Notes under the pieces: generated by a model
What the model was told of the DNA's origin: nothing
The model's database searches: none
What the model saw: the letters and a program-made list of their open reading frames with translations, nothing else
From: Takakia lepidozioides
Lineage: Eukaryota; Plantae; Bryophyta
Assembly (NCBI GenBank): GCA_030704615.1
Contig: CM060731.1
Span: forward strand, 14,694,001 to 14,758,000
Length of the DNA: 64,000 nucleotides
Reading direction: 5' to 3'
Part shown: one piece after another, positions 21,235-62,884 of the stretch
Layout of the letters: the number at the start of each line of letters is the position of its first letter
How positions within the stretch are numbered: the first letter of the stretch is position 1
Made by a program: the position numbers and the translations under genes

Positions 21235-24200
21235 TCCGCAAGATCTGCTTCACCACGGAATTCACCCTCTCCGTTTGGCCGTCCGTCGTAGGTCGGAAGG
21301 CGGTGCTCATCTTGAGCCTCGTCCCAATCTTCTTCCAAAGTGCCCTCCAAAATTTACTCGTAAACTTTGGATCGCGGTCCGAGACAATATCCTTCGGGAG
21401 TCCATGATGCTTGAAGACGTGGGCGAAGTAAAGTCGCCCCGTCTCCTGTGCCGTTGCCGTCTCCTTGGTGGGGATGAACTGACCCATTTTACTGAACCTA
21501 TCCACCACCACCATGATTGCATCGAATCCTTTTGACAGCGGCATAACAGTCATGAAATCCATCGAGACACTTTCCCAAGACCCTTCTGGAATCGGCAAGG
21601 GTTGTAATAGCCCCACTTGTTTTTTGTATTCGCTCCTGTTTTGTTGGCATGTGGTGCATGTCTTGACATCCTCCTCGGCCTCCTCCCTCAGTTTGGGCCA
21701 GAAATACTCTTTCTTCAAGAGTGCCGCGGGGCGCTGGGCTCCGCCGTGGCCCGCAAGCGGACCATCATGACATTCTCTTAAGAAACTATCTCTGATCCCT
21801 CCCTTCGGCACGTAGAGATACTTTTGCTTGTACCGGAGCAGTCCATTTTGCAAGTGGAACTGCAATTTCTCGCATCACGGACTTCGCAATCTCATCCTTC
21901 CGGTAAGCCTTCCGGATCTTCCTTTGGAGCGTCATCTTGCCCCTGTACACCATCATGAGCTGCTGCTTTCTACTTAAAGCATCGGCCACCACATTGTCCC
22001 GTCCCGGTTTGTACTGGATATCCACGTCGAACAGTGCCAAAGTGTCTTGCCACCTAATTTGTTTTGGGGACAACTTAGGCTGCGTGGCAAAATACTTCAC
22101 CGTGACATTGTCCGTGAACACCTTCACCGGGTTGGAACCAATATAGTGGCGCCAAAGCTCAAGGCAATGCACCACCGCCTTCATTTCTTTCTCGTGCGTA
22201 GGCCACCGTCGCTCCACTTCATTCAGTTTCTTATGTAAGCCACTGAACGTCCATCCTGCATGAGTACACCCGCAATTGCGAAGTCCAACGCATCTGTATG
22301 GATCTCAAATGGACGGTCGAACTCCGGAATTTTGAGGACTGGAGCTTCCGCCATCCGCTGCTTCAACTCGGCAAAAGCTTGGCCACAAAAGGTGTTCCAT
22401 ACCCAGACTTTGGATTTACACAGGAGGTCTGACAGCGGCCCCGCGATCTTGGCGAAATTTCTCACATACTTCCGGTAATAGGAGACAAGTCCTAGGAAGG
22501 ATCGCACTCCTGGGACCGAAGTCGGAGGCTCCCAGTCCAAAATCGCCCTCACCTTTCTGTCATCCATTTTGATCCCATCATGTGTAATCACATGCCCCAG
22601 GAACTCCACTTTCGTGACCCCGAATTCGCATTTTGAAGCTTTGGCATACAGCTTCCCTTCTCGCAATTTCTGGAACGCCCTTTTTAGGTGCTCTAGGTGC
22701 TCTTCCTTTGTTTTCGAGTACACCAAGATGTCGTCGATATACACGATCAAAAAGTCATCCAACCACTCCTGAAAAAGGCTGTTCATTAGCGTGCTAAAGG
22801 TCGCGGGTGCGTTGGTGAGCCCAAAAGGCATCACCAAGAACTCATATGAACCATACCTTGTCATGCACGCGGTCTTCTCCTCGTCTCCTTCCGCCACTCA
22901 AATTTGATGGTAGCCGGAGCGCAAATCGATCTGGCTGAAATACTTCGCTCCTGCCAACCGATCAAAGAGGTCATCGATCCTTGGCAAAGGGTACCGGTTT
23001 TTGATAGTCACCTTATTTAGAGCCATGTAATCGACAGCGTCCCATCCTTCTTGTCTGCGAATAGCACCGGGGCTCCATAAGGTGACTTACTCGGCCGGAT
23101 GTACCCCTTTGACATTAGATCCTTGAGCTGAGTCTTCAGCTCAACCAACTCTCTGTGGCTCAACCGGTAGGGTGCCTTGGCAGGCGGCTCCGATCCCGGT
23201 ATCACCTCAATCTTGTCGGTGGCAAGTCGCTTGGTAAATCCTCCGGCATCACATCCTGGTATTTCTCCAAAATCCCCTTGATCCAATCTGGGCTCGGCTC
23301 CCCATCGCCTTCTCCCTTCACTTGTCTTACATAAAGCAAAAACTGGGGCTCGTGTGTCTCCTCCACGGCCCACTCCCTTGCTGACAGAAGGTTTATTCGC
23401 CCTCCCACGGGGTTGGGCGTTTCCGACACTCGTAAAACTTCGCCACCATGCTCACACGGTAGCGTGACTACCCTCTTGCGGCCATCTATGACCGCTCCGG
23501 ATCTGCTCAGAAATGTCATCCCCAAAATGAGATCCACTCCATCGATCTCGCAAATGGTGAAGTTCTCATGTCCCTCCCAACTCCCGAGTTGAAGAGGAAC
23601 ATCAAACGCCAACCTCGTCGCCAATTGTGGTTCTCTTTTTGCAGAACGCACCTCAATAGAGGCCCCCACATCACTTGTCGGGAGTCCCAACTTTCGTGCC
23701 GTTGTCGGTGTCATGAAGGAGTGCGACGCTCCTGTGTCCACCAACAACGACACGTTAGTTCCGGAGATTATCCCACTCACAAACATTAACTGACTCCCTT
23801 TTCGCAAGGCGCCAGTTTCCTGATACAACTCACAAAGAGTAGTTGCCTACCTTGCAAGTCTTGGCGACCATCACCTCCACCAAGCGGCAGATGGAAGCTT
23901 CAGACAACTCCGTGGTTGCCCGAGTCATATTCAATTGTCGGGGATTCGTGCACTTCTTGGCCATGTGCCCGGACTCCCCACAATTGAAGCACACTCCATC
24001 GAAGGTCGCCTTTTGTCCGCCATAAGGTGTCGCACCTGATTTTCCTTTCGGAGCACCGGGTGTCGTCTTGGCGTGTGAAGGCCCTCCCTTCGATTTCCAG
24101 GTGCCATTGTCGCCGCGTGGCCTATCCCACTTCTTTTCTGGTCGAAAGGAGTCACCCTCCCGCCAGGTCTTCTTGTGGTTCAGCTCTGTACGGCCTTGTC

Positions 24201-25750
24201 TTTCGCCCCTAAGGACATCCGAGAAACATTCAGCCCTCTCAATTGCCTCGTTCAAAGTCTTAGGTGGCTTCTCCTCCAACTTCCGTCTGGCCCACGAGGC
24301 CAGTCCCGCCACGAAGTTGAAGACCATTTCTGGTTCTGCCATGTCCTCGACTTCGAGCAACAGCACATTGAAAGCCTGAACATATCCCCAAATGTCATCC
24401 GTTTGCTTCAGATTCCTCATCTTGTCCCGGGCAAGCCATGACTCGTTGAGGGGCACAAACTGTCTCTTCATCAGTTCCTTGAACCCACTCCAGTTCAAAG
24501 TTTCCGGGTTTGGACCTCGGTCGTGAAGGCGTTTCTGCCACCATTGTTGAGCATAGCCCCTCAAATAGGTGGAAACCACCTCCACCCGATCCTCGTCACT
24601 CAACTTGGCCGCCCGGAAGTACTGCTCTAGCTCCAAGAGCCAGGTGTTGAGTGCCTTCCGATTTCGGACGCCCTCGAAGGTGCCAGGTTCCTTAGGCTTC
24701 ACCTTAAATTTTGCCTTGGTGGAAGTGACATTAGCCGCCTTCAACACGTCTTTCAACATCCCGCCAAACTGCGCCAACAACCCTTCCCAAAAGGCTGCTG
24801 GCATGGGAGACATCTATTGGTATGTCGGAGCTCTCGGAGATTCCTCGGGCTCCGACTCCTCAGATTCATCCCGTTCTTGAGTGGACTCATTTTCATGCCG
24901 CTTCGGTGACACGTCGCCCCCATCGGGCTCACCAGGATCATCATCTTTCGGGCCGTTCCGCTTTTGCTTTGGCTTGCCCGACCCCATGATGAGGCCAATC
25001 CCAAGGACGATCGCGTACTGAACTCTAAGCTCTAATACCAAGTGTCGCGCACCTCACTTCGGTAAGCTCCCCTTCAAGTCATAGTTACTCGCTTTGATGC
25101 GCGCGCCTAACTCCCTAACTGGCCGCCGGGCCAACTTAGAGCTTCGGCTGCTCACCGGGACATAATGGTCCCTACTCCTCCATAAGACCCTCTCCCAATT
25201 TGGGCCTAATGGAAATTCCCTTTGGTCAATGGCAGTCCGGAATAACTCCCCACACCTTGGTCGCTTTCCGGCTCGCACGCTTACTCACTAGTTTTTGGTC
25301 ACCAACGGGCTTGCACCGTTCTCGGGTTACTACATCCTATATATACTTCTGTGACTGTCCGCGGGGGTTTCACAAACAACCATGCCATTTTATGGCGAAC
25401 CACCACGAAAACCCTCGATTCCCGGTGATGAGTCGCGGTGAGTCTTGGCCCACCCACCATGGTCCCATTGGACCGTGATGAGTCCCAAGACTCCCCACGA
25501 CTCCCACCACAAGGTCTCCGCCCCCCTGGTGAGTCCTATGCCACCCCCACTAAGTCCCACTAAGCTAACACCACCCCCACCGCAATCCGGTGTGCGGGGC
25601 TCCACCTAGTGAACGCCTCTGCCTCCTTGAGTGCCTTGGGCACTCAAGGGTGTTTCAGCCCCCGCATCTATTGTCGCCACTGCCCCCACCACAGGGGCAG
25701 CCCCTCTCGTGTCCCGACCCCCTGCCCTCAAGGCAAAGGGCCGCGATACT
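21235..25750 (-). mobile_element. Ty3/Gypsy chromovirus, Galadriel-like (element E): 5' LTR (about 25750-25043), PBS, gag, PR, RT, RH and truncated INT
   Basis: PBS TGGTATTAGAGC (tRNA-iMet type, 25029-25040). Gag CFNCGESGHMAKKC. PR LVDTGASHSF. RT YIDDIL. RH ERRWPTHEKEMKAVVHCL..KLSPKQIRWQ. INT HxxxxxxH..Cxx[16 protein letters not shown]. Outer LTR boundary is approximate. Confidence 0.9.
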
Positions 25751-27452
25751 GGACATCTTCATTTTCCGACCTCCTCGTATCGAACACTTGAGTTGTGCCC
25801 CGAGCTTTGAATCTTCTCTTGTTGGGGCAGTTTAATGCTATGTGATCATCTTCTCCACAATAAATGCATAATCCATTCGAGCGCCATCTTTGTTTTTCTT
25901 ATGGCGTCAATGGCTTGAATCGGACAGCATCAATCTGCATAGGATCATTACCGGATGTCTAATGGATCGTTGTATTTGGTGCCGTAGTAGCAACGGCATG
26001 GTGCGTCATCGACCATCCAGATCGCTTCTCTTGATGTCTTTCGAACAAACGATTATCGCATGCAATGACTTGGGTGATGAATTCACTCAATGTACTCACG
26101 TTTGGCATTGTTAGCAACAAATCTTTTACATCCTCTTTTAGGCCATATCGAAGTTGATTAATGAGGCTCTTCTCATTCCAGTCGAGGTCACATGCAAGTT
26201 GTCGAAATTCGGCAGCATAAACGGAAGTTGGACGTGCTTCTTGTCGAAGATTTCGCATCTTTGTCTCTGCAACTCTCTCTCTCTATCATTCTTTCCAAAT
26301 GTTGCAGTGAACTCGGACATGAACGCTTCAAAATTGTATAGTAAATGCGAATTTTTCTCTAATAGCGGTGCAAATCAAGATAGGGCAGTGCCTGATAGAA
26401 GGGTGCCCATGAATCCCACTTGAATACCTTCATCAGGATAGCGTTGTGGATGTAGTCGTAAGAACATCCGTACTTATTGAACAAAACCGCGAAATCTTGA
26501 TCTCGTCCCATCAAATTTCTCGGGCATGCTGACCTTTGGTTCCCTTGTAATCTGTTGAAAATTTGGAGGAACCATTGTAGTAGGATTTGTTGTAGTAGAG
26601 ACTCGTAAGGTTGAAGATCCATTGTTCGACTCCTTCAACTCTGAAATTTGTTGTTGCAAATTGTTGAGAGCGTTGTCAAGATCTTAAGACTGATCAGCTT
26701 GTAGTTAGGTAGTAGAGGCATGAAGTTCTTGCATTTGGAGCTGAAGACTCTGCAATGTGGCGACCATTTCCGCAAATGTGCCTTCCATCTTAACTAACTA
26801 AGGGACAAACTTTAGTCTCGTCAAACTGTCAAGGACGAGAACATGACTGAACACAAACAAGAGATCAGACTAGAGGTACAAGACTAGACAAGAAGTCAAG
26901 GTCGGCGTAGCCGAATGCATGATGAGTAAATAGGAATCAAGACGATCTTTATAACAATGAACAAGAATACAAGATATTGGAACACGACTTGAATACTGGA
27001 ATGCTGGAAACTGGACTGGAGTACCAGAACTAGAAACTGGGCTAAAGTATTGGGAACTGGAAATAAGAGTAGCTTGAACTGGTGTTGGCGAGACTGAAGA
27101 GTGTCTAGTCTCGCCTCCTATACTGGCTATTAAGAAGTTCCCTAAGAAGCTTCCCCTATGGAGGTTTCTTGATGTAGAAGTTTCCAAGATTAAACAAAGG
27201 TTTCTTGATGGAGAAGCTTCCTTAAACAAATGAGGTATCTTGATGGAGAAGTTTCCTCCAAATGAAGCTTCCTGAGCAGTTTCGCAAGTTACTCTTGGTA
27301 ATTTGATAAACTCTCGGTAACTTGGTAAATAATGATAAATCATGGTAGATCATGGTAAGTCATGGTAAGTCATGGTAACTTTCGGTAATATGGTAACTTG
27401 GTAACTTTTGGTATTTACTCATGGTAAATTCTTCTGGGCTATGTCCGTGACA
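25750..27452 (-). mobile_element. 5' half of Tcn1-like chromovirus C: LTR 26827-27452 and degraded gag
   Basis: TG..CA-bounded 626-bp LTR homologous to 47118-47748. Gag EPKVSMPEKFDGTRSRFRGF..YAAEFRQLACDLDWNEKSL. Flank ACAGC at 27453-27457. Confidence 0.88.
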
Positions 27453-27457
27453 ACAGC

Positions 27458-28421
27458 AAGGTTTGCTGCTCACCGACCTCACTTCCTCTAGAGTAGGATT
27501 TTCCTTGCACTTTTTTTAGTCCTCCATATTGGATGTTTTTTTCTTCCCCATAAAATGCTTGTACGTTGTTTTTTTCACGCCTGTGTGATGGTCGTCATGC
27601 TCCATGTCACTGCAAGATCGCAGGAAATTTTCGAGATCAATGGAGAGTATCCGACCATTTTCAAGAAGTCTTGTTTTTGTTAACGGCCATTTCACAATGG
27701 ACATCAGAGAACCGGATTCTCCAGAGATTGTTCTGGTGACTAGAACCCCAACATCGTCCTCTCTGAGTTCGTCATTCAGAATGATCTCGTTAGGAATGCA
27801 TGCCTGAATTCGACCTTTGAACAGGGTGTTTCCGTCTTCCCCAAGAAGAAGGCACTGCAAGTTTCTCCAGCAATTTCTCCCAAGACCTACAGCCGGATCC
27901 CCTTCAGTCTCACCGTTGGACGGAATTTCATTGCTTTCAGTGAATTGTCCTTGACAATCACTATCTTCTGTGATGGAAAGAGATCCCGGGAGTCTTTGAG
28001 ATGCTGAATCCACATATTCATGCGGGTGAACACAGGAGACGTCCCACACAATTGGAGTCCCAATCGCCTCTTTCAATGTGTTAGCATCCATGTGTCGATA
28101 AGGCAAAGGACAGGATCCGAATGCGTCATCACAAAAGATCAGGATAACTGAAATGGTAGACGAACACAAGTGTTGTCCGTGGCAAGTTCCTTCCCCAGAG
28201 ACATTCAGGCAATCTCCTGAGGCAACCACTGATGGAGATCCAAGAAGCAACAGAAACACCCTTTGGCCTACTTGGAACCCCATGAATTTAGTAACCTCCA
28301 GTGGACAGTGGAGGTTCAATAAAATCGGATTACGGGAAGGAAGATAAACTGAACGAAAGAACGTCGTGCCACCAAAAAGAAGAGTTGAAGTAGAACTTAT
28401 GGATTTAAAAGGTAAAGTCAA
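27458..28421 (-). pseudogene. N-terminal part of DUF7869-like DNA transposase T
   Basis: Reads through one stop to ..EVRSVSSKPCC, which continues in frame as KLQCCQYFDW at 47112 across the ACAGC TSD. Confidence 0.7.
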
Positions 28422-29074
28422 TGTTTGGATCTATCCCGAGACTGATGAAAAACACTTGGAATTGAAGTGGAGTATGAGGGCGGACTATAGCACAATGTGA
28501 CTACATCTATCTGATCTGTCAAAAGAAGTCACAAATGCCAATCTCCACTTGACAGTGGAGGTTGGATGATATCTGTTGATGAAATCAACCACATAGATGA
28601 ACAATGGATAATGAACAGGCCCTCTGTAGATGAGAAAATCATTCAGGGATGGATGAGTAATAATGTGGCGACTGCCCAGTAGAGGTTTGGGAGTAACTTT
28701 AAACAAACAAAAGCAAGTGTAGCTGGTGCACATGGAGAGTACACAAAAAAATGAGTATTATATTATCCTAATGTGTAGTTGACACCCGAGACTACAGAAG
28801 CAGAGAGAGATGCAGAGGCTGCTTCAGAAGTACCCTATGGCCAGAGTGGTGCAGGACAAGCAAAGAGGTGCACATTGTCAAGAGAGGTGCAGGATGTCCA
28901 GAGAGGTGCGCGAGAGAAAAGAAACAAGTGAGAGGTTCGCAGTGGGAAGTTGGTTCTGTGTGGAGTTGGACGTTATATAGAGGTGACAAGTAACTTTCAT
29001 CTTGAATCGGTCCGAATAAACGTGAAGAATGCCGATTCTGACAAGTGGCCGGGAGAAATGAAGTCATGCGGCTA

Positions 29075-29460
29075 GTGCAATTACGACTACATCACTATGC
29101 AGTGACAAACACGAAATCAGTTCTACCATCACTGCGGAGTGATAAGTGCGAAGTGATGGTCGTCACTGCATACGTGGCACCTACCCAACGACTCAGAGTG
29201 ATGTGGCGTGTAGTATTGTAGTCATAACTATACGACTACAAGGCTACGTGTCATGACTACACTTACGACTACGTCACTACAGATGAGCGCCAACATGGAT
29301 AGGTCTCTCCATGACACACGTGACCCCCGGGATGTATATGACTACACGACTATACCCTATGACTACACTTATGACTATATCACTACTCACTACTCACTAC
29401 ATCACTAAGGGTAGCATGTGGTATATGTCATGACTACAAATATGACTCCATCACTATAGC
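29075..29460. repeat. Cluster of GACTACA/CACTAC short motifs in both orientations
   Basis: Numerous (T/C)GACTAC and TCACTA motifs; resembles a subterminal array of a DNA transposon. Confidence 0.6.
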
Positions 29461-29839
29461 ATTGTACTAGTTCTGGTAGGTCATCTAACACGTGTCTTTA
29501 TTCGATTAGTTTATAAAACCATTAACACTATTTTATTTATTAATTTCATGTAAATTTTATTTATCGTTTTGATATTCAGATATGTTTAAATATACATAGC
29601 AATATATTTAATTGAATGAAAGAATTTCACACAATTCCCTCCTCTCGCAACATTCCAAGCCCGCAACACGTACATGTTTTGGCCATTTGTTGCATGTTCG
29701 TGTTGATCTTCCATACACTCAATCATCCTGGGTCATGGGTATTTTCATGGCAGAAACACTAATGTTAGTGTGTGATTAACTTGCTCAGGATACCTTTGTC
29801 TCTCATCCTTTACATGCAATAGCGGGGAAGAGGAAACAA

Positions 29840-30450
29840 ATGTTGTTAATTTTGAGTGTCAACGGACTCATCTGCTACCGGCCACCCCCAACCGGCGGTG
29901 AACTGTTTAAGGAGAAATTTTGTTTCAGGAATGTGACACTTCAAGTTCCTGACAGACCGTTTGTGGTGCCTCGGCATGGAGTCTTGGAGTTTCTGGACCT
30001 TGCATTGAAGTATTTTCACTTGGCCATTTGGTCATGCGCTGATAGAGGTGTTCTTTGTAGGATGTTGGAGAGCTTCGTCCCCACGAAAATAACGAGAAGT
30101 TTTGCTTCATATGGTCAGCTGAGGATTACAAGGATACTACCGGTTATATCAGGCCCGGGATGAAATATCTCGTGAAGGATATTCGCAGTGTTATTGCCAA
30201 GTTCCCTGGTAGACCGTTTGCTACGCAGAGACAAATATTTATTGTAGATGATGAGCCATCAAAAGGCCTGCGAAACCCACAAAATACTGGATTCTTCTCT
30301 TTCTCATTCAAGCCATCACCAAACGGCTTGCGTGACCGGTATGATATGACAAGGGCAGTGTGGCTATATATATCGGAGATGGCTAGAGCTTCAACAGTCG
30401 TTGATTACATTAGCGAGAACTGGGCAAAGTGTTCTCATAAGCCTATTGGT
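29840..30450 (+). pseudogene. FCP1/NIF-homology (HAD-like CTD phosphatase-like) domain, frameshifted, catalytic Asp missing
   Basis: LLILSVNGLI (degenerate motif I), PRHGVLEFLDLALKYFHLAIWS, YLVKDI, IFIVDDEPSKGLRNP..GFF follow the NIF motif order. Confidence 0.7.
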
Positions 30451-30499
30451 CGAGACTTGCATTGTCACCTACATAGGCCCGCAACATATCTTCTACAAC

Positions 30500-33400
30500 C
30501 TGATTTACTCTCAGCTCCAAACATTGTCCAAGAACGAATTGATTTTTGGGATTTGCTATGTCTGAATATTCATGGGCATAGTGAGGTGGACCATTGGATT
30601 TTGGCTGGTGATTGTAACATGACTGATAGGCCTACTGATAGGCTGGATTCTCACGCTGGTCTCTCACTTCAAGAATCTGTGGCTTGGGATTCGTTGTGTT
30701 TGCTTGTGGGTCTGGTAGATGCCTCCATCCCTCCGGATGATTCCCTGAGATTTACCTGGACCAACAACCGCATGCCCCCTGATCTTTCTATGGCTAGACT
30801 GGGCTATGCTAGATTGTGAGCAGAAAAAACTGTGAGCAAGATTTTGCTCATAGTTTTCACCCTATTATCGCGGACCTGTACCTGTTGGAAGCCCTGTCAC
30901 CGTGGGCTTCAAGCGTCGAAAATGGAGCATTTTTTGTAAAGAGTGAGCTTGCGGGTTAGCAGCAACATTGTGGAGTGGGTGATTGATGTTTGAGTGTGTT
31001 TTGAAAAGGAGTTAGATGAAAGGAGTGGATGAACAATGGATGAATGTGCGATGAAGAAAGATGGATGAGAAAGAGAGTGGATGAATAATAACGACGAATT
31101 CAGACCGGGGACCGCTAAAGGAAGCCCGAAAACACATCTTCAAACATGCAAGGCAGAGAAACTGGTGCTTCATAAATGTTTGTCTTAAAACAAATGAGTC
31201 ATTCCGAAAAGGCACTTCCACTGCTATCTGATTTTGAGCCCAAAACTAATGCAGAATTGTCTATAAAGATACTAGCCTTGCTCTGCACAAAAGCACCTCT
31301 GTCGCGGACCACAGGAGGGGGAGATGAGAGGAGACGAATGGGCCAGATTAAGGTGGCGTTGACGCCACCTTGACGCCACCTTAATCTGGTTGGTCTTCTA
31401 GGCTGGAATTAAGCTCCAACAGGGGATGGGAATTAAGGTGGCGTTGACGCCACCTTAATGCTGAGCCTGTTTCCCTCTATGAACATGGCTGCTCACCAAG
31501 GCTTTTATTTAGTTTTATTTAGTTTTTTTTTAGTTTTTTAGTTTTTGGGGTGAGTTGTCATGTTCCAACAGGGGCTGGGAATTAATGCCGAGCCTGTTTC
31601 CCTCTACGGATATGGCTGCTCGCCAAGGCTTTTATTTAGTTGTTATTGTTTTTTTGTTTTTTTTTGGGGTGAATTGTCATGTTCCAACAGTTTTTTTTGT
31701 TTTTTTTTTTTTTTTTTTTTTTCCCCGAATGTGCTAGATTAAGGTGGCGTCTTCTGGGCTGGAATTAAGCTCTAACAGGGGCTGGGAATTTACTGCTCGC
31801 ATGACATTCTCCCCTGGGTCTCGTCAGTCCCACTAGGCCCCATTTTGCCTGGGTTTGATCATGTGGAGGTCAGTTTATCCTTCTGTGCCCCGGGCCATAG
31901 ACCTAAGGGCAGAGGTTACTTCAAGCTTAACCCGTTTTTCTTAAAAACCCGGAAGTCTTGGAATCCCTCGCCATAGTCTGGTCTTCTGCGGGTAATCACT
32001 TTCACTCTCCTACTTTACGTTATCTTGCTAAGCTTAAGGCTACCCTCAAGGAAAGTCAGGAACTTTCCAGATCCTTTGCTCTTTTGAGAGCTCAGAGGGA
32101 AAATTGTTTGCTCAAGTGCCTGGAGGTCTGTCAGCAGCTAATTGAGGAAAAAAGGGAACGCCCCAATACGTTGCTCAATTACAATAGAGCTAAGGCTAAC
32201 CTCCAGGCAATCAAGAAGCACAAAGATGATGCCATGAGGCGAAAGGCGGGGGTCAACTGGTCCTTGAAAGGGGAAAAGATGAATAGGTATTTTTTTTATC
32301 AAAACAAAGCAGCGATCTATGGCTAACTCCATTGCTGCGCTGGTTGACCCTCAAGGGGATGTGCACTATTTAGCTAAAGAGATCTTGGCTGGGTTGGCAG
32401 CGGATTATTTTGCCTCACTTTTTGCTAGGCATGAGCCCTCACCAAACTCCAATGCAACAGCTGATTCCATTCTTCGTGCTGTCCCCGATTCCCTCAGTGC
32501 GGCCGATAAAGAGATGCTTGCTTCTCCCTTTACACTTAGGGAACTTAATGAAACAGTTGACTCTCTCAGCTCAGGTAAGGCGCCAGGCCTGGATGGCCTC
32601 CCTCTTGAATTCCTTAAAGTGATGTGGGGCACGATAGAGATGATTTTCTAGCTATGTCTAATGATATATTGAGCAAAGGGATCATGCCTTCGCAGATTTT
32701 TCTTACCTTGCCCCTCTGTTAAATTCTGAGCATGATCCATGGCCTCTCCCTATCTAGTTGGGAGGAACAGGGGGCTTGCCCTTCCAAGTGTTGTTAGCCC
32801 TCTCTTATTCACCAGATGGAATTCAAGGTTTACGGTTTCTAGCCTCCCCTAATGGGAATCTGTCGGTCCTGTCAATGGGGATTGTTGCCAGATCTGAGGT
32901 CTTCCCCATTAGAGTGATTGATCTGGTGTCAGGGAAAACCAACCCCCTACCCCCCCCGGGATGGTGGAGCAGTGGGCTGCTCAATCTAGTCTATGGGAAG
33001 TGGCAACACTTTCCTAATGCTACCATTAAGTGGAAGTCAATCCAGAAAGACATATGGCGCAAAGATAGAGCCTCTAAGATTTCCGCTTTCCTATGGAAAA
33101 TTGCTAATAGAATCCTCTTTGTGGCGGTCCACTACTTGGACGCCAACCCCTCCTGTAAAATGTGCTTTGGCAACTTTGAGGAGTCGATTGAGCACTGCCT
33201 TGTAAACTGCCCCATGGCTGCTCATGTTTGGAGATTGGTGTTTATCTTTTATTCCAACTGGATGGCAGGTGGTCTGGGAACTCCTTTAATCCAGCTCCTG
33301 CAAGCACGCATGGACTAGATCAGGGACCTAAGTAAAGGTATGATCCTAGGGACGTCTTCAACATGGATGAGACTCAAGGCCATCTTTGGAGTCCATGCTT

Positions 33401-39865: not shown

Positions 39866-39869
39866 AAGT

Positions 39870-43640: not shown

Positions 43641-43646
43641 TCTCTC

Positions 43647-47112: not shown

Positions 47113-47117
47113 ACAGC

Positions 47118-52084: not shown

Positions 52085-52170
52085 AACATCACCCTCAAGC
52101 AATTTTCCTAACAAATACTTGGAAGGACGAAAAGAGCTCAAAGAGAGTCTTAGAGGGGGGCAAGGGGGTG

Positions 52171-52403: not shown

Positions 52404-52473
52404 CTGGTGCAGCCCGTGACTGCTCTTGCGTTTCAACATGCAAATCATGCTGCAAGGGTTTGTCATGGATACC

Positions 52474-55400
52474 ACTGTATCCTTTTAACTTATTGGCATT
52501 GACTCTTCCCAGTATTTCTTTGTTAATGGTTTGTAACATGGCGGTGTTGTTATCATACATCTTTTGTATGACATAAGGTCTTTTCCATGGTGATTTAAGC
52601 TTAGAAGCTTTAATCTTTCCTTTCTTCTGCAACCATAGAACCAAATCCCCCGTCTTAAAAGTCTTTAACTTGCCTTCATCAAACTGTTCCTCTCTCTTCA
52701 TCTGAATTCTGGTCATATTATCAGCTGCATCAGCACGTACTTCTTTCACATGGTATAATTCATGTTTCCTGACCTTAATGGAATCTTGCAATTCCATTCT
52801 CTTTCCCCACTCCGTTCTCATGGTAGGTAACAGGAATTCCACTGGAAGTAAGGCTTCCATACCATAAACTAATTGGAATGGTATATACTTAGTGGTGACT
52901 TTATATGAAGTCCTGTATGACCACAAAGCTGTCAGCAGCTTTGTATCCCAATCCGTTCTGTTTGCATTGACTATCTTAGCCAAGATAGTACATAGTATTT
53001 TGTTGGTAGCCTCTGCCTGCCCATTACCCTGCGGGTAATATGTTGTACTCTTTCTATGCACAATTATGAAACTTTAGTCAACAACTCAATGGTCTCATTC
53101 ATGAAGTGACTTCCCTGATCACTGATAAATTCTAAGGGACAGCCAAATCGTGTAAGTATGTTCTCATACAGGAACCTTGCTGTGGACTTGGCTGTGTTGT
53201 CCCTCAAAGCTTTAGCTTCCACCCACTTCGTAGTATAATCAGTGGCTGTAATTATGTACCTGTTCCGTGTATTCTTGGCTGGTGGGTTAATTGGTCCAAC
53301 AAAGTCTAGTCCCCATTTCTGAAATGGTTCCGTAGGCATTGTAGGATGCAAGGCCATCCTTCCAGATCTCTGCAAAGGTCCTAGCCTCTGACATTCATCA
53401 CAACTCTGACAATACTCGTGTACATCTTTGAACAAAGTAGGCCACCAGTAACCTGCGAGTAGTATCTTCCTACTGGTAGTCTCTTTTCCAAAATGACCTC
53501 CAGCCACTCCTTTATGAACTTCCTCCAAAACTTTATTTACTTCATGGTGGTACAAGCATCATTTTAGTACTCCATCAGGTCCTAGCTTATACATTCTGCT
53601 TCCTACCATAGTATAAGGTAAAGCTTTGATAGCGATTCTCTTCCTCTGCTCCTTACCATAACTAGGTGGGCACTGACCATGAGCAAAGGTAGTATCTGAT
53701 TGGCCACTGCCAATCTAACCAGTCATCTGCACTTCCCTGCACCTCCACTACAAATAGACTCGCATCTGGTAATTGATCATCTATTCCTGTGGCTGGTTCT
53801 CCTGTTGATAACCGTGACAAGTGATCCGCCACAAGATGCAGTCTCCTAGGCTTGTAAACAACCTCGAACTCAAACTCGTGCAAGATTATCAACCATCTTG
53901 CTATTCTTCCACTTATCAGAGGTTTGTTTACCAGGTATATCAGAGCCTGATAATCCACATAGAACATAAACTTCTTGCCCAACAGGTAATGCCTGAATTT
54001 CTTCACTGCATAGATCATTGCCAATGCTTCTCTTTCCGTTGTGCTATAGTTCCTTTCAGCACTGTTCATCAACCTGCTAGCATAGTACACAGGTGAATCT
54101 ATATTTCCTGTAACATTTTGGGCTAAACCCGCTCCCAATGCTTCTCCTGATGCATCGCAGTGAACATGAAATACTACATGCCTGTGAGGGTTAATCAGCA
54201 CAGGTGTAGTTGTTATTGACAGTGTAAGTTCCTCAAACGCCTGTTGACATTCAGCTGTCCAGGCAAACACTGCATCTTTCTTCAGAAGCTTGCTCAATGG
54301 TGCTGCTTTGTGCATACCTTTTGACAAATCTTCTGTAATAACTGGTTTGCCCAAGGAATCTCCTTAGACTCTTAACATTCACTGGTGGTGGAGAGGCTTT
54401 AATGGACTCTATCTTCCTGGGATCCACAAGAAGTCCCTTCTTACACACAATGTGTCCCAGAAGCACCCTGAGTTCACACAGAAAGTACATTTCTCTGGAT
54501 TCAGGCCCAGACCTTTCATCCTGCATCTGGCCAGACATAACTCCAATTTATGTAAGTGCTCATTCTTAGAGCTGTACACACTGAAATCATCCAAGAATAC
54601 CTGCATGAAATCATCCAGATACTCATGAAAAGATTCACTTATCTCTCTGTTAGGTCGCTGGTGCATTACAAAGTCCAAAGGGCATGACTTTGTATGCATA
54701 AGCACCCCAGTCTGTGATGAAAGCTGTTTTTCCTTGGTCTTCTTCTGCCACTTGCACTTGATTATAACCACTGAAGCCATCCATGAATGAGTACATCTCA
54801 TGGCCTGCCACAGTGTCTAATACTGCTTCTGTGAATGGCAAAGGGAAAGGATCTTTCTTCGTACAAGCATTCAGCTTCTTGTAGTTCACACAAACTCTTA
54901 GTTTACCATTCTTCTTGGGAACTATAACAATGGGTGACAACCAAGTTGTATACTCTATTGGGTATATAAACTTAGCCTCAGCCAACTTCTTAATCTCTTC
55001 TCCAACCTTCTGTGCGTAGTTGGGATTCATTCTGTACCTCGCCTGCTTGATTGGTACTGACCCTGGTTCCAGTTCAATCTTATGCTGGGTGGTATCCCTT
55101 TTAGATCCTCATAGCTCCAAGCAAATACATCTCTGTATTTGATGAACAAGCTTTTGGCTTGAATTCCGGCTCCAAATCAGCTCCTACTTTCACCATCCTC
55201 GGTTCCTCTTTAGTTCCCACATTCACTTCCTCACTTGCTCATCAGCTGTGATTGTCCAACCAGTCACCACTTCATCCTGTAAGCTCACAGTGGCTAGTTC
55301 CTCTAGGATTTCCATTTCTCCTTCTCTTTCTTCATAGAAATGTGATGGGTAACTGCTGGTTTCTCTTCAGTTGGTGTTGCTGTCACTACACCACAGCAGA

Positions 55401-57838
55401 TACCTCTTAAACAACTTAGGCTTTCCAGCCGCATCTCTGCAACCTGCTCCCACTCTGGGTGTGCAGCAAATAGGGTAGCTTCCTGCTCCTCATCCAGTCC
55501 TCCTTTCCAGTCATACTCTCTGACTCCTCGAGGTCTTCTTGTAGCAGGTAATCTACTAGATTTCTTTGTGGTAATTTGTATCTCGTCCCCATGCACTGAG
55601 AATTCCAGTCATGGAATACCTGGCATGTTCAGCCACGGACGTCCCAATAATAAGGAGTAAGCCTCCATGACTTCATCCATCTTCAACACAGTTACTGTGA
55701 TCATAAAGATCATCTTCTGTATCTGTATCTTAAACCCTCTTATTAATCCCAATGGATGTACACTTCTTTGATCTGCCATTGTTACTGTAAATGGGGCTGG
55801 TTTCATGTTACTTAGACCAAGCTTCTTTCTTAATTGGTCTGTCAGATATTTACTCCAGAACCTCCATCTATCAGTACATCAGTTAGTTCTGTGCTTCCAA
55901 TTCTCAATTGGATTACTGGCATAGAATCATCAAAGTCCATGACTGTTTCTCGCCCTTCCGGCTTCACATTATAACTGGTCACCTTGCTGTTCAGGTCTGT
56001 GTTTCCTGTCTCCTGAGCAATTCGATTGATTGCTTGATACAGCCTGTGCCTACAATAAGGTGCCACAGCCAATAGCTGTCCAATGATCCTCACTCCCTTC
56101 TTCTTCTCCATCAGAATCAGAGGAATCTGCCACAGGAATATCAGTACTCTTCTGCATTTCCCTTATGGTATCTGCCACTTCCTTATGCAGTTCCTTCTCA
56201 TCTCTCCAAGCCTCATCATCTTCAGGCATATCACTGCCACCTTCATTATCATCTTCTTCCTCTACTACTGGAGGTATTAGTTTGGCTTTACTTCTTGTTA
56301 CTATCATTGTACTTACTTCTGGTACAACACATGGCCTAACCATGTGAGCTGCCACCACTGGGCCCTCATTCACAGGAGCTCTCATCTCATTCTGGTGTCT
56401 AATCCAGAATGAACAGGCTGCCTTGCGATGTCCTGGCTGATTACAATAGTAACATAGTTCTTCACCATTGGGTCCTCGCCCTTGGTCTGTTCTTGGATTA
56501 TTTCTGTAATCCTGATTCCCGGGCTGGTAATTCCCCCTTGGATTACCCTGATAGTTGCCTCTGGAATTTCCTTGGTAATTCCCTCTTGAATTACTTCTCC
56601 CTTCCATGCCATTGTTATAACCACCAGACCTACCATAGTGGTCCTGATCATTGTTTCTTCTTGGGGGGCTGCACCTGATGCACCCTTACTTGCCTAGGTT
56701 CTCTTGCAGCTGTCCTTCTGTTGTAGTAACAATTCTCAATAGAATGGTTATCCATTTTACAGATAGTACAGTGTTTCTCCTTCATGTGGCATTCTGTGGT
56801 GGTATGGCCTTCATTCTGGCACTTTGCACACCATACACCCTTCCTCCAATGTGTTGCAGCCTCTGTGGCATACTTCTTCAAATTTCTTCCAATCTTTTTT
56901 CATAGTTATCCCTCTTCAACTTCTCCTTTCTCTTACTCTTCCTTTTTAGTTCTTGCTCTTCTTCTTCATCTGACTCATCCTCAGAGTCTTCATCATCCCT
57001 TTTCTCTCTCCTGAGCATTCCCAATTGCTCAATTCTGTTTGCAGTTTCAAATGCCTCCTCCACTGTATTATGGGGTAACATATCCACTTTTTTTGCAGCT
57101 CTGGTCTTAGTCCACTCACAAACCAAGTCTTCTGTAAACCGAGTGCTGGTACTGCAGCCAGCTTTTTCATCATCAATTCCATCTTTTCCATATACTCCTC
57201 AACAGTTTCATGCTTCTTTTGCTTTAACTGTTGTAAACTTCCATACACTTCATCCTTTACTTCCTGAACCTATTTCGAAATGCTTTTCAAGCCATTCCAG
57301 GTTAAAAATGATTATGATATCTTCCATCACTTTTCTTGATAATGAACAAGGAAACAAATCTCATCACATCATATTCTCATTGTTCACTATACACATGTGC
57401 TCAACTAATACATCCTTCCCCTTTTCCTGAATATATTGGAAAGGGTTTTTGCCCGTATTGGTTGTAACGCCATCTGTGGCCTACCTTCTACCCTGCACTG
57501 TGCTGCACCCTTGCTTGTGCTGGTCCTTCTGACCTGGTGTTTTTTTGGATCTTCCACCAAGTGGTGGCTGGAACAAGGCCCCACGATATTACAGTATTCC
57601 CAGCTTCAGTCGCCCCACTCCTGTCCCCAGAGCACTTCCCCCCTGCCCCCCTGAGCCGACCCTCGTTGGCCTGTGATCCAAATGCTCCACTTGATCCAGG
57701 TCCAACGGGTTGGGATGTCCTGGTTGTAGTCTCAACCTCAGCTGTTGAGTTACTTTCTTCTTCCTCTTCCAATTTCTTCTCTCTGTTTTCATCCTCCAAG
57801 TTCTGCCCTTGGGTTTCTTCTTCACTCATGTAACTCAA
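52474..57838 (-). pseudogene. Near-complete frameshifted gag-pol of a non-chromovirus Gypsy (Phygy/Athila-like, no additional RNase H seen)
   Basis: Gag with three zinc knuckles (CAKCQNEGH, CTICKMDNH, CYYCNQPGH). PR LIDGGSGVNI. RT YSFMDGFSGYNQ, QVFLDDF. RH HCDASG. INT HKGVAGGH..CDEC, WGLDFVGP, SDQG, NGQAEATNK. Confidence 0.92.
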
Positions 57839-58702
57839 CTGTAATGGTGTTGGAGAGTCTCCATAGAATCAGTGACAGGTGGACGCACAATAACTTCAGG
57901 AAAATGGCTGACGGAAGAAAAGACGGAAACCAGTTTAAAAAATAGACACGTGGAAGTCAGGGCGCGACACACAGCTGAGAAAAGTGCAAGAACACATCTA
58001 GGTGGTGAATTAAAAGTCAGCGCGTCAAATGGATGAAAGGCGGGCCATTAATGAATACGGAAAAAGGGGAACGGAACAAACGGCAAGTACAGAAAAGCGA
58101 AATTCTTGTCACATGTGTGATCCTAGTGGACTATCCAGCAGGGAAAGTCCACTAAAGAAAATGAAATCTAAAATCCAGTCACAGCGGTTAGAGCCAATAG
58201 AAAGCCAGAGAAAGGATCAAGAAATTGGAGGGAAATTAAGCACAAGAGGCGGCGTCATACTGAGTAACGGGCGTCTCGACGGGACAGACCATCAATGCTA
58301 TAGCTTGGAAACTATGGAGGAACTAACAGACATACGCTCGCAATATAATTACGCAGTGGCATAGACACGAAAAGAACAGAGCGGAGTTTTCTCTTGAACG
58401 ATGCTTGCAAGCTCCACAGGCTTACAAGAAATTACCCATAGCTTTTGTGGCAACCATACGTTTATGCTTTGTGCACTACAGGCATTTCTGCAGTTTTACA
58501 GCCAAAAACATTTCTGTGGGTCTAAAATGAAGAGAGTGAGAGGAATGGAGGAAATCAGGGTGAAGAGCACCACAATTCTGCAGAAACAAACGATTGCTAC
58601 CCACAGGCGATACAGAACTGAAGGAGCTGAGATTGCAAGGATTGCAAAGCATAGATTGGACATTGCACCATAGACAGTACATGTTACAATTCTTGCAGAA
58701 CT

Positions 58703-61700
58703 TTGAGCCAAGGACAGGAACAACAACGGTTGAAGGGAGTTGAATTAGTAATTACTCCCCTATACCTCCAGCAATTGTTTCGATTGCCAGCAGGTCAGGT
58801 GCATGTGGAGGAGCATAGGGCAAGACTGCAAATAGGGGACTTATTCCAAGAAGGGAGTTTCTTTAAAACTCAGGGTTATGCTTGTACCAAGGCGTGTACC
58901 CAGGGCTAAAGGAGGTAGGCCAGGTATTGAACGTTCTGATTGCCATGAAACATAACCAACAGTATTTGAGCAGATCCTACACGGAGGAAATACTCAAAGC
59001 CCTGAAAGGACAAAAGGTAGAATGGGCGGACATAGTGTACAACGCACTGGTGGAGGAGATGAAAAGATTACAAGGTACTACCACAAAGTCTCCTATCATA
59101 GTGTCTGGCCCAATCATTGCTCAAATAATTCTTGATTCTGGCATACTTGATGCGCAAGAAAAGAAAGAAAGGAGATGGGAGTGTTTGAGCCAGAAACCAC
59201 TGCAATGGAAGAGCAAGGCTCTTCACACAGTGAGGGTGGATTAGCAGGGCAACCCAAGACTAAGAGGCAGAGACGGGGAAAGACTGTAGTGGCGGATCCA
59301 CTGGCTTCACGGATTCCGCATGATAATGTTTCCCAAGCTCATGTGCAGGAAGGGGCACAGCAGCACAGAGAACTGCTATTACTGGAAGCAGGACCTTCAG
59401 AGATGGAAGAGGAAGTTACTTCAGTATCACAGCCATCACATCCAGCTGATCGGCTTGTCACAAGGTTACAAGTTGTCCATGCAGCTCAATCAGAAATAAT
59501 TGATTTGGAAAAAGAAGGGTTAGATATTCCAACTACAGAACAGATAGTGGCAGAAATTGAAAAAGGGGACCTTCTCTATGAATATTCTGGTCTGGTCAAG
59601 GAGACAGAGATTCCAGAGGTACAACAATTGCCCAAGGGAAATCCTGAGGTGCATATAATACACACACATGTGTCGGAGGTACCACAGGTAGAATGTCAGA
59701 CACTGCAGCACCGGTGATGGATGAAGTGGTTCAGGAAGAAGAAAATCCGGTGGGACAATGGCCTGAGTGGTTCGTGAGACATCACACGGTTGAGGATCAG
59801 GAGGAGGAACAGCAGCAACCTCACCATGATGACCCTCAACAGGCAATGCTGATGAGTTCCATAGGCAGGACACTTAATTTGTTGGGGACTTGTCAAATCC
59901 CATGTTCCAACTACCCAATTGACAGCCTTGAGAGAGGAACTCAGGAAGGAGTTTGAGGCTCAACTAGCCACTGAGTGTGCAAACAAGGTCGATGAAGAGG
60001 TCACTCTCAAGATGCAGCAGGACTTGGAAAATACAGAAGCGGCTTTGCAATTGGCCAAGGAACAATTGATTGAGGCAGGCCTCGCGCAAGACCAGTTGCA
60101 CGAAGCACATAAGCAACAGCTATACCAAATGCAGGTGCAGCATGAAACCAAGTTGCAAGAAGTGAATGCACTACATACGGAGTTGTTGACAGTGCATGAC
60201 AGGATGGCGATACCATGTGCTACATTCACAACTATGCTTGACCAATCTACAAAAGAAATAAACAGTCAAGCGGAAAAATGTACAAAGCAGAAGCAGAGAA
60301 TGTGAGCAAATGAACCTCATTGTCGATATGAAGAATACAATCTGTCGCAATGAGGATACTTTCAAGCAATACAAGCAGATTGAAGTTGATCAAGAGAAGT
60401 ACATCCTGGAGTTGCAACAAACGCTCGTGGCCAATAGAAATGAAATCTCGGTCACTAACAAGGCTTGGAAGGAAGCTAATAATCTACTTGCTGCCTATGC
60501 GAAATTGGTTGAACCTCATGCGAGCGCCATGGAGGCTTACAACAGCAGTTAGAAGTGTACAAACTCAGAGAGGAGCACACTCTCAGAGGAACCACAAGCA
60601 ACTTGGTGGATAACAGCCTTATGAAGGTCTGGTTAGCACAAGGGCTAGTGGAGGGCAAAGCACCACGAAAGCTCACCCAAAGCGAGATGATGAATGAGCT
60701 CAGACTGCAAGTGCAGAACATTGCCACAACTACTATAGACAATGTCTATAGTAGGATATAGCAGAGTTACAGGAGGATGTAGACGGACTGCAGACTCAAG
60801 TGGAGGACCCTCACTTCAAATATCGACAAAAGAGTCTATATCCCTCAGGAACAGCTAATGGCTTCTTATTACAAGCCAAAACTTGGCCTTCTTTTCAGTC
60901 TTCACAGGAGGTGCAGGAGATGCCAATGATACAAGAGCCAGTTTCCAGGGCTGCGAGGCTCGCACACGCATTGCAAATGCATACAAATGTGGTGCGGTCG
61001 GGCATCACCCCTCACAACAAGTCACTGTACCAGTAGCTGAACCTGTTGTTACTACAACCACCACACAGCCACACACAGCCTGAGGTATGGGGCAATGCTG
61101 CTTTTAACCCACCTAAAACTCCAGCTGCAAGGGAGTACAGTAGGGCTATGATTATGCCCTTCAACCAAATTCCCATCATGTTGGATTTAGCTTGGAAAGA
61201 ATTTAGTCCTCCGCAGTCATTCGCACATTACTACCAAATCATGGTATTTGGCTGCCAGTGGCAACTAGGACTAAAGTTCTTCCGAACAATCGACATATTG
61301 AGGATCATCACTTTGCACAATACTGGCATGAGGCAAGTACAATGTTGAAGGAAATAATTGCCTTCCAAGTTGTACATGGATTCATTTATACCAAGACCAA
61401 GGAGGTAGCAAGTATTGTCATGGGAATGCGGGTTATACTACGCCACTCGCTTGTTTTTGGCCGACACGTTATCACATTTTCTTGCTGAGCAGAACTCCGC
61501 TTGCAAGCCACCAGCTCTCGATCTGCATGAGTTCTTCTAGGGGGATCATGCAGCAGATCTCGACTAACCTTCCAGTGCCAATCATACCTGTACACAGTCC
61601 TCACTGACCGGCCAAAGTTATGATGCCAAAAGGATTCTCAAATTCGTTCATGGTTTTCAAAGCGGCCTGGAACAATTTGTCAACACAGAAATTCGGCCAT

Positions 61701-61955
61701 TGATGATATTTTCTATAAGGGACATGTGGCATGAAATACTTGCACGGTGCACAAGTAATTGGTACCCCACTCACCTGGACTGACAAGGAGCTCAGTGTCT
61801 TCACCAATTTTGCTGTTCAGCGTTTACAGCAAGTTGTAAAATATAAACTTCCAGACATGGTAGGACAACATTGTATGCCCCAGAGGATTCCACAAAAAGT
61901 TCGACAATTAAAACACTTGAGAGGTGATGAGGATTCTGATACAACTGTTTCTTAA
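58703..61955 (+). pseudogene. Long degraded accessory 3' ORF of element B (about 1000+ codons)
   Basis: Chain of + frames: LKGVELVITPLYLQQLFRLP and VEWADIVYNAL (like retrotransposon accessory domains), an acidic linker and a long coiled-coil. Ends upstream of the PPT. Confidence 0.65.
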
Positions 61956-62234
61956 GCGGATTCTTTTGACATGGGAGAAGACTATGCAATTCAGATGGCA
62001 GAGAAGAAGCGACGGGGGTCCCCACATGCCTGAAAGGTTACCTCGATATCAACCTCCAGAGGGCCTCACTTATCCTGGTAGTGTTCAAAACATCTCGTCA
62101 ACCAGTGACAGACCTCGGGCTCGTACACACAGTCCGCCACGAAACTCTCAACGTAAGAAAGGTGCACTCACAAAGGTTGCTAATCGCAATCAGTAAACCG
62201 TGAGGACACGGCTTTTTGAGAGGGGAAGGGATAA

Positions 62235-62884
62235 TGTTAGAGGATTGTCTGGGACATAGACACTTACAAGGGATCTGTAGGGTACCCTTAATTTTTGCAC
62301 GGACTGAGACCAACAGGAGCCTTAGGGGTGACAGCAGCGCACTGTAGAGGGGGTTACACAGTCCGTCACAGTCGTCACAACCGACACAGCCACACAGCCA
62401 GTCACAGCCGACACAGCCAGACACAGTTTAGCACAGCCCGACACAGCCCGTCACAGCCGACACAAGCCACACAGCCAGTCACAGCCTGACACAGCCAAAC
62501 ACAGTCGCACAGCCAGTCACAGCCCGTCACAGTTTCACACAGCCAGTCACAGCTTGACACAGCTGTCACGACCATAGGGAACGGAGAGCAGGGCAGGGAA
62601 CGACTGTGGGGAACAACACCTGCAAATGGAACATGTTAGTTCACGGACGACGGTTAGTGAGGGAAACGGTTAGAGCCACGGGTAGGAAGATAAAGGGAGA
62701 AACAAGGACTGAGAAGGGGACATACATATATATATTCTTGGAAGCACTTCAGGGGGGGGAGTTCTTGGTCATGCATGAGAGGGGATCAGACGGAGAGTAA
62801 AGATAGAGAGCACGGTGAAGGAGGAAAGATGATTAGTAGATGCTTGTTATATGCAAAGCTGTAGTGATATTGTAGAGCAGATTA
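62235..62884 (+). mobile_element. 3' LTR of element B (truncated)
   Basis: Preceded by PPT GAGAGGGGAAGGGA. Starts TGTTAGAGG. Reverse complement of about 44960-45582, including the CACAG repeat block. Confidence 0.9.

Follow-up and report, generated by a model that had tools for sequence, protein, structure and literature searches.

We report that a region of about 42 kb within the window (the whole 64,000-nucleotide stretch of Takakia lepidozioides DNA that was analysed) is confirmed, as read from its letters, to be a pile of dead transposons that appears to have been broken at about eight points, with the pieces rejoined in altered order. The evidence supports one ancestral nest, cut into about seven to eight blocks and rejoined with loss and without gain, rather than ordinary nesting, and it also supports that in this nest a DNA transposon, T, carried the chromovirus C (with element E inside it) and element B, with element A beside T. 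The favoured reading of the reordering is a series of local inversions with deletions at the breakpoints, to which we assign a probability of roughly 0.45. None of the elements is alive any longer, and no function attaches to the region itself; what it records is a local chromosome rearrangement rather than a new type of element.

Composition of the region

The blocks, with their coordinates in the window and their strands, are as follows.

18046-21234, plus: left flank, what remains of a hAT-type transposase (its Atlas look-alikes belong to hAT dimerisation/RNase-H-like families)
21235-25753, minus: E, a Ty3/gypsy element inside the gag of C (Pfam, sequence and PBS scan)
25754-27452, minus: C, 5' part, with gag and zinc knuckle (25754-26826) and 5' LTR (26827-27452)
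27453-28286, minus: T, N-terminal piece, running from position 10 of the profile to about 302 and including one copy of the C target duplication (ACAGC, 27453-27457)
28431-38066, no strand assigned: W, upstream of the T transposase gene, the 5' part of T itself and/or its flank, ending at 38066/38067
38067-38367, plus: A, 3' LTR, reduced to its last 301 bp and followed by GGTTT (38368-38372)
38368-39883, minus: satellite unit U3, 3' untranslated part of T and T C-terminal piece (profile 812-1040)
39884-40632, plus: satellite units U2 and U1, telomere-like (TTTAGGG-type); GGTTT at 40628-40632 precedes A
40633-43641, plus: A, 5' part, with LTR (40633-41526), primer site from 41527, gag, PR and the N-terminal part of RT
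43642-45582, minus: B, 5' part, with LTR (45582 to 44622), primer site (44621 to 44603) and a leader of 979 bp that holds an acidic ORF and is cut at about 43642
45583-47117, minus: T, middle piece, profile 287-760 including DUF7869, bounded by the B LTR at 45582 and by ACAGC at 47113-47117
47118-49700, minus: C, 3' part, with LTR (47118-47748), PPT (47752-47761) and integrase to about 49.66-49.74 kb
49701-52084, minus: F, C-terminal part of RT plus RNase H, of the A/X lineage (lineage comparison, alignment)
52085-57870, minus: X, complete gag-PR-RT-RNase H-integrase of the A/B lineage, with neither LTR
57871-62884, plus: B-type 3' part, with 4.4 kb in which no domains are recognised, then the PPT (62218-62234) and an LTR cut to its first 650 bp (62235-62884)
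62885-63033, plus: right edge, with 93 bp of AT-rich sequence and then a 56-bp inverted copy (62978-63033) of U2 (39942-39997)

A, B, C, E and X show Ty3/gypsy features, with Pfam pol domains in the order PR-RT-RNase H-integrase, primer sites located for E, A and B, and PPTs for C and B, while X consists of genes without LTRs. An ordinary nested insertion leaves the order and orientation of the outer element's halves unchanged. This does not hold for C, A and B, and only E inside C conforms, E being a normal nested insert.

An earlier note on this DNA had proposed that a nest X-A-Y-B-Tmid-C(E)-Tnterm was cut into about eight blocks and rejoined, by chromothripsis-like or circle-mediated reshuffling rather than by ordinary nesting. 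The cutting and rejoining and the departure from ordinary nesting both stand, whereas the assignments of X, of Y and of the RT-RNase H piece are corrected below and the circle is dropped, as nothing requires one and inversions plus deletions suffice for every change. Each of the junctions which it listed is seen, at 21234, about 39.87-40.0 kb, 43641, about 49.7 kb, 52084 and 62884, and two more are found at 38066/7 and about 57870.

Outside the named elements, Pfam gives no match across most of 1-21 kb and 28-38 kb, nor for the hAT-type left flank, the last ORF of which (20160-21167) ends 64 bp ahead of the junction 21234/21235. A plus-strand LINE-like element, with zf-RVT at 32758-33315, lies in block W together with a tandem repeat of 190 bp (37023-37722); no similarity is found between W and the other blocks, and no link between the hAT flank and the end of W. 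Exact-protein look-ups with two ORFs of the window return no record.

The transposase T and the two halves of chromovirus C

Decisive evidence comes from T: an alignment of its homologues runs straight through the insertion site of C. A profile of 7 full-length homologues places positions 10-265 at 28277 to 27531, 287-760 at 47142 to 45604 and 812-1040 at 39862 to 39226, all on the minus strand and non-overlapping, so that the order N, C, middle is borne out. The alignment of T homologues goes from 28253 to 27453 and then restarts at 47115 with the residue number unchanged (P0004, 302/302; P0016, 133/133), and thus the two flanks of C are adjacent codons of one gene and C is a single insertion whose halves are now misordered. 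The LTRs of C are direct repeats (26827-27452 and 47118-47748; 93.4% identical, K2P 0.062) with ACAGC beside both (27453-57 and 47113-17), the gag side lying at 25962-26282 and the side with PPT and integrase at 47752-49689. Element E, inside the gag of C, has its 5' LTR at about 25043-25753, an initiator-Met tRNA primer site at 25029-25040 and then gag, PR, RT and RNase H; its integrase is truncated at 21235, the alignment of this integrase to C ends at 21239, and the 3' part and 3' LTR of E are absent.

By homology, T qualifies as a predicted large DUF7869/Sola-like DDE DNA transposon: its full-length homologues, of 1101-1250 aa, share the DUF7869 domain (PF25273), which is detected on 45580-45933 with E = 2e-28. 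Toward the 3' end, residue 1092 of homologue P0032 maps to 39052, and satellite unit U3 occupies 38368-38460. No inverted match that could represent terminal inverted repeats is found between 28.3-30.2 kb and 38.4-39.1 kb, and the ends of T are not located; a palindrome at 31350 and 31435 has two copies only. The LTR of B adjoins T at profile position 760. When the 93 bp after the B-type 3' LTR (62885-62977) are compared with T codons 761-806 by frameshift-tolerant alignment to six homologues, these codons, which would be expected there, are not detected at a significant level (p = 0.23), although the best local match lies at the expected profile position; this counts against the favoured reading. 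It was also considered that satellite unit U2 might be an intron of T, with GT...AG ends and codons colinear to within one residue; as the unit occurs four times, it is at most a possible intron.

Element A, the satellite and piece F

Element A has two LTR copies in direct orientation, at 38067-38367 and 41224-41526, with 93.7% identity (K2P 0.059). Each is flanked by GGTTT, as had been noted together with their permuted order. Because the flank is a telomere-like satellite, the 5-bp match is weak when taken alone; joining the two flanks, however, restores one satellite unit in colinear order. The U2/U1 satellite block has its boundary within 39868-39998. What the earlier note called Y is the telomere-like satellite that surrounds the 3' end of T.

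The 5' part of A terminates, and F begins, at one shared RT codon, the two RT sides now being oppositely oriented. Both the A 5' part and F resemble X (48% over 125 aa and 66% over 343 aa), while the gag of C is similar to that of E and not to those of X or A, and its integrase is likewise E-like and not X-like. It follows that F belongs to A and that the junction between F and C is a chimeric but colinear pol, in which two like-oriented pol genes meet no more than about 100 bp away from matching positions. The assignment of the RT-RNase H piece at 49.7-52.1 kb is corrected accordingly by these protein comparisons, the piece being of the lineage of A, not of C, and now fused to the C integrase. 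A small in-frame insertion in a single colinear pol had been tried for the junction at about 49.7 kb and was overturned by the lineage comparison. Within F there are an acidic expansion of 270 bp at 49789-50062 and, at 51068-51810, an element of 743 bp that has terminal inverted repeats.

Element B and element X

That the B LTRs are mutually inverted, as first remarked from the sequence, is upheld by the comparison of 44961-45582 with 62235-62884 (K2P 0.025), and the B-type 3' part as a whole is inverted relative to the B 5' part. The full B LTR is about 961 bp (45582 to 44622), which corrects a shorter earlier extent, and the primer site at 44603-44621 has 22/23 bases as in A; with this length and this primer site, the copy ending at 62884 is truncated by about 330 bp. 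A homology search with a B-internal ORF gives no match.

The 3' edge of X has a PPT-like run plus 4-7 bp, its junctions being at 52084/5 and about 57870. No LTRs belong to X. Three readings were weighed, namely that X is nested in A at the RT codon, that it is the gag-pol of B itself or that it is a separate copy of the B family, and it may be the gag-pol of B rather than a separate neighbour. The PPT-like edge of X makes it uncertain where both X and the B-type 3' part should be placed.

Mechanism of the reordering

Based on the favoured reading, the starting point would be an ordinary nest, in which T took C at about codon 302, E later entered the gag of C, B also inserted in T at about codon 760, and A, related to B and X, lay beside the 3' end of T in the telomere-like satellite. 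At least the breaks splitting B would postdate the B insertion (LTR K2P 0.025). The 42 kb would then have been locally reordered into 7 blocks at 8 new junctions, losing the middle stretches of A, C and E along with portions of two LTRs and 46 T codons, and gaining nothing. The middles and the 46 codons are absent from the region, and a search elsewhere in the window finds none of them. The likeliest route would be a succession of small inversions with deletion at breakpoints, one of which would have swapped A and C at matching pol positions, and the others would have arisen via staggered breaks or inverted satellite copies.

Three features of the junctions point to inversions by homology or staggered cuts over random religation. 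Inverting 43642-52084 rejoins the RT of A, and the ends of this segment carry TCTCTC in inverted orientation (TCTCTC at 43641-43646 and as the reverse complement of 52079-52084); likewise, a 56-bp inverted repeat, 53/56 identical (39942-97 and 62978-63033), flanks the segment 39998-62977. Thus the two inferred inversions both end in short inverted duplications, to which the F-C junction at matching pol positions is added. It is noted that the 56-mer is a member of a 4-copy satellite family, and the 56-bp repeat may be a paralogue rather than an inversion footprint.

The 6-bp match and the match of pol positions were both noticed after the fact. Several fixed inversions inside 42 kb are also a lot, which counts against serial inversions.

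Alternative explanations

A single multi-break event, local and chromothripsis-like, in which about eight cuts were followed by end-joining in random order with loss of some fragments, is rather unlikely. The five securely placed blocks read 5-3-1-4-(-2), and computation gives 4-5 inversions for these five and 5-6 for all seven; 78% of random five-block orders require at least 4, so that the observed order is as scrambled as a random permutation, and parsimony gives inversions no edge over shattering. Every ancestral adjacency within the nest is broken, the eight junctions cluster within 42 kb, and several kb are gone with no segment of the window duplicated beyond 6 bp and 56 bp, all of which speaks for a single shattering. 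By contrast, it would be expected to leave F and C colinear near matching pol positions only by chance, estimated at a few percent, it does not call for short inverted duplications at the ends of two inferred inversions, and just 2/7 blocks are inverted. That the locus records one single event of shattering and religation in the germline within a heterochromatic nest of about 42 kb, a natural, fixed, kilobase-scale chromothripsis in a bryophyte, we regard as unlikely; if true, the order before the event would be legible to the base from the target duplications and the split transposase gene.

That the blocks are real and their order or orientation comes from mis-joins in a repeat-rich region is quite improbable. 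The region is made only of repeats and all junctions are read from one assembly, which would allow such an artefact; but the window contains zero N bases, the junctions lie in sequence unique within the window rather than in long shared repeats, material is missing rather than duplicated, and a contiguous assembly with as many as eight mis-joins in 42 kb would be an extreme case.

Very improbable is a segmental (tandem) duplication of the nest with later reciprocal deletions, which would make the permuted pieces complementary remnants of two to three copies. It would account for the downstream part preceding the upstream part in C, A and T with no change of orientation, but no segment occurs twice, the inverted F and B-type 3' part cannot be produced in this way, and the five increasing runs of the unsigned order would, by our count, need at least three cycles of duplication plus loss.

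That the repeat pairs are independent copies of the same families inserted nearby, with no rearrangement, is highly implausible: A, B and X do have a common primer site and lineage, the 5-bp flank of A lies in low-complexity satellite and the B pair has no verified shared flank, but the idea is excluded for C, the flanks of which are consecutive T codons with the same 5-bp duplication, while the three pieces of T jointly cover the protein without overlap and the two RT pieces of A meet at one codon.

The usual view of dead transposon nests is that of simple insertions in layers, and genome history is dated from them. The present locus shows that repeated reordering, or one shattering, can affect a nest within 42 kb, and that target duplications and a protein-coding transposon, when split, allow the original order to be reconstructed. 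Should footprints of this kind be common in the genome, they would give a direct measure of the rate of small inversions and deletions in bryophyte heterochromatin, and would call for caution in LTR-pair dating and in automatic annotation of nested elements.

Comparison with known systems

Nested clusters of LTR retrotransposons are ordinary in plant intergenic DNA, as in maize. As in such nests, the Ty3/gypsy elements here possess LTR, primer site, PPT and 5-bp duplications and are nested in each other and in a DNA transposon; unlike in them, the halves of C, A, T and B are permuted or inverted.

Inversions in Drosophila arise either when inverted repeats recombine ectopically or from staggered breaks, with inverted duplications left behind by the latter (PMC1885836). 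Similarly, the 56-bp and 6-bp inverted duplications flank the two inferred inverted segments here, and at one junction two inverted pol genes are joined at matching positions. The differences are that kilobases rather than megabases are involved, that several inversions overlap in one nest, that the duplications are short, with one coming from a multi-copy satellite, and that the reciprocal chimera is deleted. With chromothripsis and chromoanagenesis (reviewed in PMC6371609 and PMC6503150) the locus shares clustered breakpoints, scrambled order and loss of fragments, but it spans only 42 kb, and at least one junction, that between F and C, has positional homology which random end-joining does not predict. 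In the maize p1 region, breakage, end-joining and recombination have been reconstructed (PMC2686159), with transposon insertions and chimeric junctions serving, as here, as markers that order local rearrangements; there, however, amplification into tandem repeats dominates, whereas here reordering and loss occur with no amplification.

Repeat pairs and gene content

The window contains no N bases, and between 21 and 63 kb its only content is decayed transposons. Comparison of the window with itself gives three long repeat pairs, belonging to the Ty3/gypsy LTR elements A, B and C, while Pfam scans of the open frames give the gene content, which includes two further such elements (E and X), the DUF7869/Sola-like DNA transposon T, and F, a stretch with the C-terminal part of RT and RNase H.

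26826-27455 and 47117-47751, direct, pair C, 93.4% identical
38067-38367 and 41224-41526, direct, pair A, 93.7% identical
44961-45582 and 62235-62884, mutually inverted, pair B
21.2-24.8 kb, minus, Ty3/gypsy genes of E
25.96-26.28 kb, gag piece of C
42.6-43.1 kb, plus, gag of A
45580-45933, minus, DUF7869 transposase domain of T
47.8-51.0 kb, minus, Ty3/gypsy genes (C integrase and F)
52.2-56.7 kb, minus, Ty3/gypsy genes of X

The inverted arrangement of the B LTRs, claimed in the earlier note, is thus borne out. The K2P distance is 0.025 for the B pair versus 0.062 for C and 0.059 for A, and therefore the B pair is the younger.

One insertion in one split gene

The T piece at 27519-28430 was searched against 1.8 billion proteins and the matches were aligned back to the window. 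The homologues can be followed from about 28250 to 27453 and resume at 47115 with the identical residue number (302/302 in P0004, 133/133 in P0016), continuing to 45583; in another homologue, P0032, residues 900-1092 correspond to 39546-39052. With a profile built from 7 full-length homologues, three pieces with zero overlap are mapped, profile positions 761-811 being absent from the mapping onto the window:

28277 to 27531, minus, N-terminal piece of T (profile 10-265)
47142 to 45604, minus, middle piece (profile 287-760)
39862 to 39226, minus, C-terminal piece (profile 812-1040)

ACAGC stands at both flanks of C, to the right of its 5' LTR and to the left of its 3' LTR, and the alignments show these flanks to be adjacent codons of one gene. 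Because of this, C is a single insertion into T, with its halves now permuted. The previously noted wrong order of the C halves with their common flank is settled by the alignment across 27453/47115, and the three-way split of T by the profile mapping. Unrelated copies as the source of the C and T parts are ruled out by the adjacent codons with ACAGC.

The broken RT of A

Although the sequence at 47.7-52.1 kb has the appearance of one colinear pol, its parts have different kin. F (RT-RNase H, 49.8-52.1 kb) shares 66% identity with X over 343 aa and 37% with E, whereas for the integrase (47.75-49.74 kb) the identity to E is 49-56% and the match to X is limited to 28 aa. The C gag is E-like, while the PR and N-terminal RT part of A are X-like (48% over 125 aa), unlike E. 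Based on these affinities, F comes from the lineage of A and is fused to the integrase of C; the two have one orientation and meet close to the corresponding pol position, somewhere from 49744 to about 49660. The plus-strand pol of A ends at 43641/2 and F starts at 52083/4, with TCTCTC present at both places. Since the two ends fall in the same RT codon when aligned to X, the RT of A was broken at one point, its sides now facing opposite ways about 8 kb apart.

It is noted that, relative to X, the RT of F carries a 743-bp insertion (51068-51810) with imperfect ~20-bp terminal inverted repeats and a possible 8-bp duplication, an organization suggestive of a small non-autonomous DNA transposon. 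X is without the acidic, D/E-rich stretch of about 85 codons that expands the RNase H-integrase linker at 49789-50062.

The satellite and elements A, B, E and X

GGTTT adjoins both A LTR copies, before one and after the other. The flanks of A are a ~278-bp satellite, composed of a degenerate TTTAGGG (plant telomere-type) run and a conserved 23-bp core; the core occurs four times in the window, once in inverted orientation:

38368-38460, satellite
39868-40632, satellite
62978-63120, inverted satellite (56-bp copy at 62978-63033)

When the two flanks are joined, a single satellite unit is reconstituted in colinear form, which supports, short of proof, A being a single insertion, and upholds the earlier observation of an A LTR pair sharing GGTTT with the 3' LTR to the left of the 5' LTR. 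The satellite is interstitial, with A inserted in the array, and one unit adjoins T coding sequence with GT...AG edges.

In B, the primer site at 44603-44621, directly after the LTR end, is nearly that of A (22/23 bases), placing the LTR at 45582 to 44622. This LTR is longer than the repeat pair indicates, so that the copy at 62235-62884 is truncated and 62884 a true breakpoint. The B 5' LTR adjoins T at profile position 760, and the B 5' part consists of LTR, primer site and a 979-bp leader, without pol. The near-same primer sites of A (41527-41545) and B are unusual, unlike the initiator-Met site of E.

E is nested in the gag of C as a normal insert, with a 5' LTR and initiator-Met primer site, and its integrase is cut at 21235, adjoining the end of a hAT transposase. 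X extends from 52085 to about 57870 with a complete gag-pol and no LTRs, and has a sharp strand-composition switch at its 5' edge. X may be B's own gag-pol, because the B leader plus the first 42 bp of X amounts to 1021 bp, the expected length given A's 993 bp; however, X ends in its own PPT-like run followed by 4-7 LTR-like bases. After the integrase, the X pol tail (52153-52450, minus) has short repeats, with a TAYHS-like motif about 5 times.

Block order

With the ancestral order stated on the plus strand and T on the minus strand, five blocks are secure:

39998-43641, block 1, satellite and A 5' part
49.7-52.08 kb, reverse complement, block 2, F
38067-39997, block 3, A 3' LTR, satellite, T C-terminal piece
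43642-49.7 kb, block 4, B 5' part, T middle piece, C 3' part
21235-38066, block 5, E, C 5' part, T N-terminal piece and W, the sequence upstream of the transposase gene

By exhaustive search, the present order (5, 3, 1, 4, -2) requires no fewer than 4 inversions, or 5 with the outer flanks oriented the other way. Counting X and the B-type 3' part as B brings the number of blocks to seven, with the order 7, 3, 1, 6, -2, 5, -4 and 5-6 inversions required. In one five-step path, block 7 would be inverted first, and then blocks 3-6, with an A/C exchange at matching pol positions giving today's F-C chimera; 39998-62977, flanked by a 56-bp inverted repeat (53/56 identical), would be inverted next, then X, and finally 43642-52084, flanked by TCTCTC/GAGAGA, the undoing of which rejoins the RT of A. 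The nest has lost the central parts of A and C, the E 3' part, parts of two LTRs and 46 T codons; none of the missing pieces was located elsewhere in the window.

Other features

A near-perfect 22-bp palindrome, whose reverse complement differs at the two central bases only, occurs in two exact copies (31350-31371 and 31435-31456) at a distance of 85 bp, adjoining a short tandem repeat (31455-31690) inside a LINE-like region. A tandem repeat of ~190-bp units, 77-87% identical, lies at 37023-37722, shortly before junction 38066/7. Outside the shuffled nest, 2696-6624 is a diverged direct repeat cluster (units of ~90-400 bp, 70-87% identical) with strong GC skew, and an RT fragment (9557-10108, minus) lies near a 460-codon open frame (12697-14076, minus) that has no Pfam match.

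Discussion

Provided that the assembly is correct, we have shown that the nest is rearranged. As the mechanism we favour several separate inversions with deletions, because one junction joins two pol genes where their positions correspond and because inverted duplications stand at the ends of two of the inversions that we infer, a likeness to staggered-break inversions, where such duplications are known (PMC1885836). One shattering event is also possible, as the block order is no simpler than random: 78% of random signed five-block orders require at least 4 inversions. Also possible is a mixture, an early A x C exchange followed by a multi-break event. Misassembly is possible too, but there are no gaps, the junctions lie in locally unique sequence and material has been lost, not duplicated. 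The two inverted blocks cannot be accounted for by duplication and subsequent loss, and overlapping relics are absent.

Thus the shuffled nest proposed in the earlier note is right and its four observations are all confirmed, whereas its ancestral order and mechanism need correction, with F assigned here to the lineage of A and separate inversions and deletions favoured; for the circle-mediated reshuffling suggested there, a circular intermediate is unnecessary. In plants, inversion, recombination and end-joining are known to reorder transposon nests locally (e.g. PMC2686159), and good descriptions exist of chromothripsis-type events (PMC6371609); therefore the locus is a well-resolved new case, not a new kind of thing.
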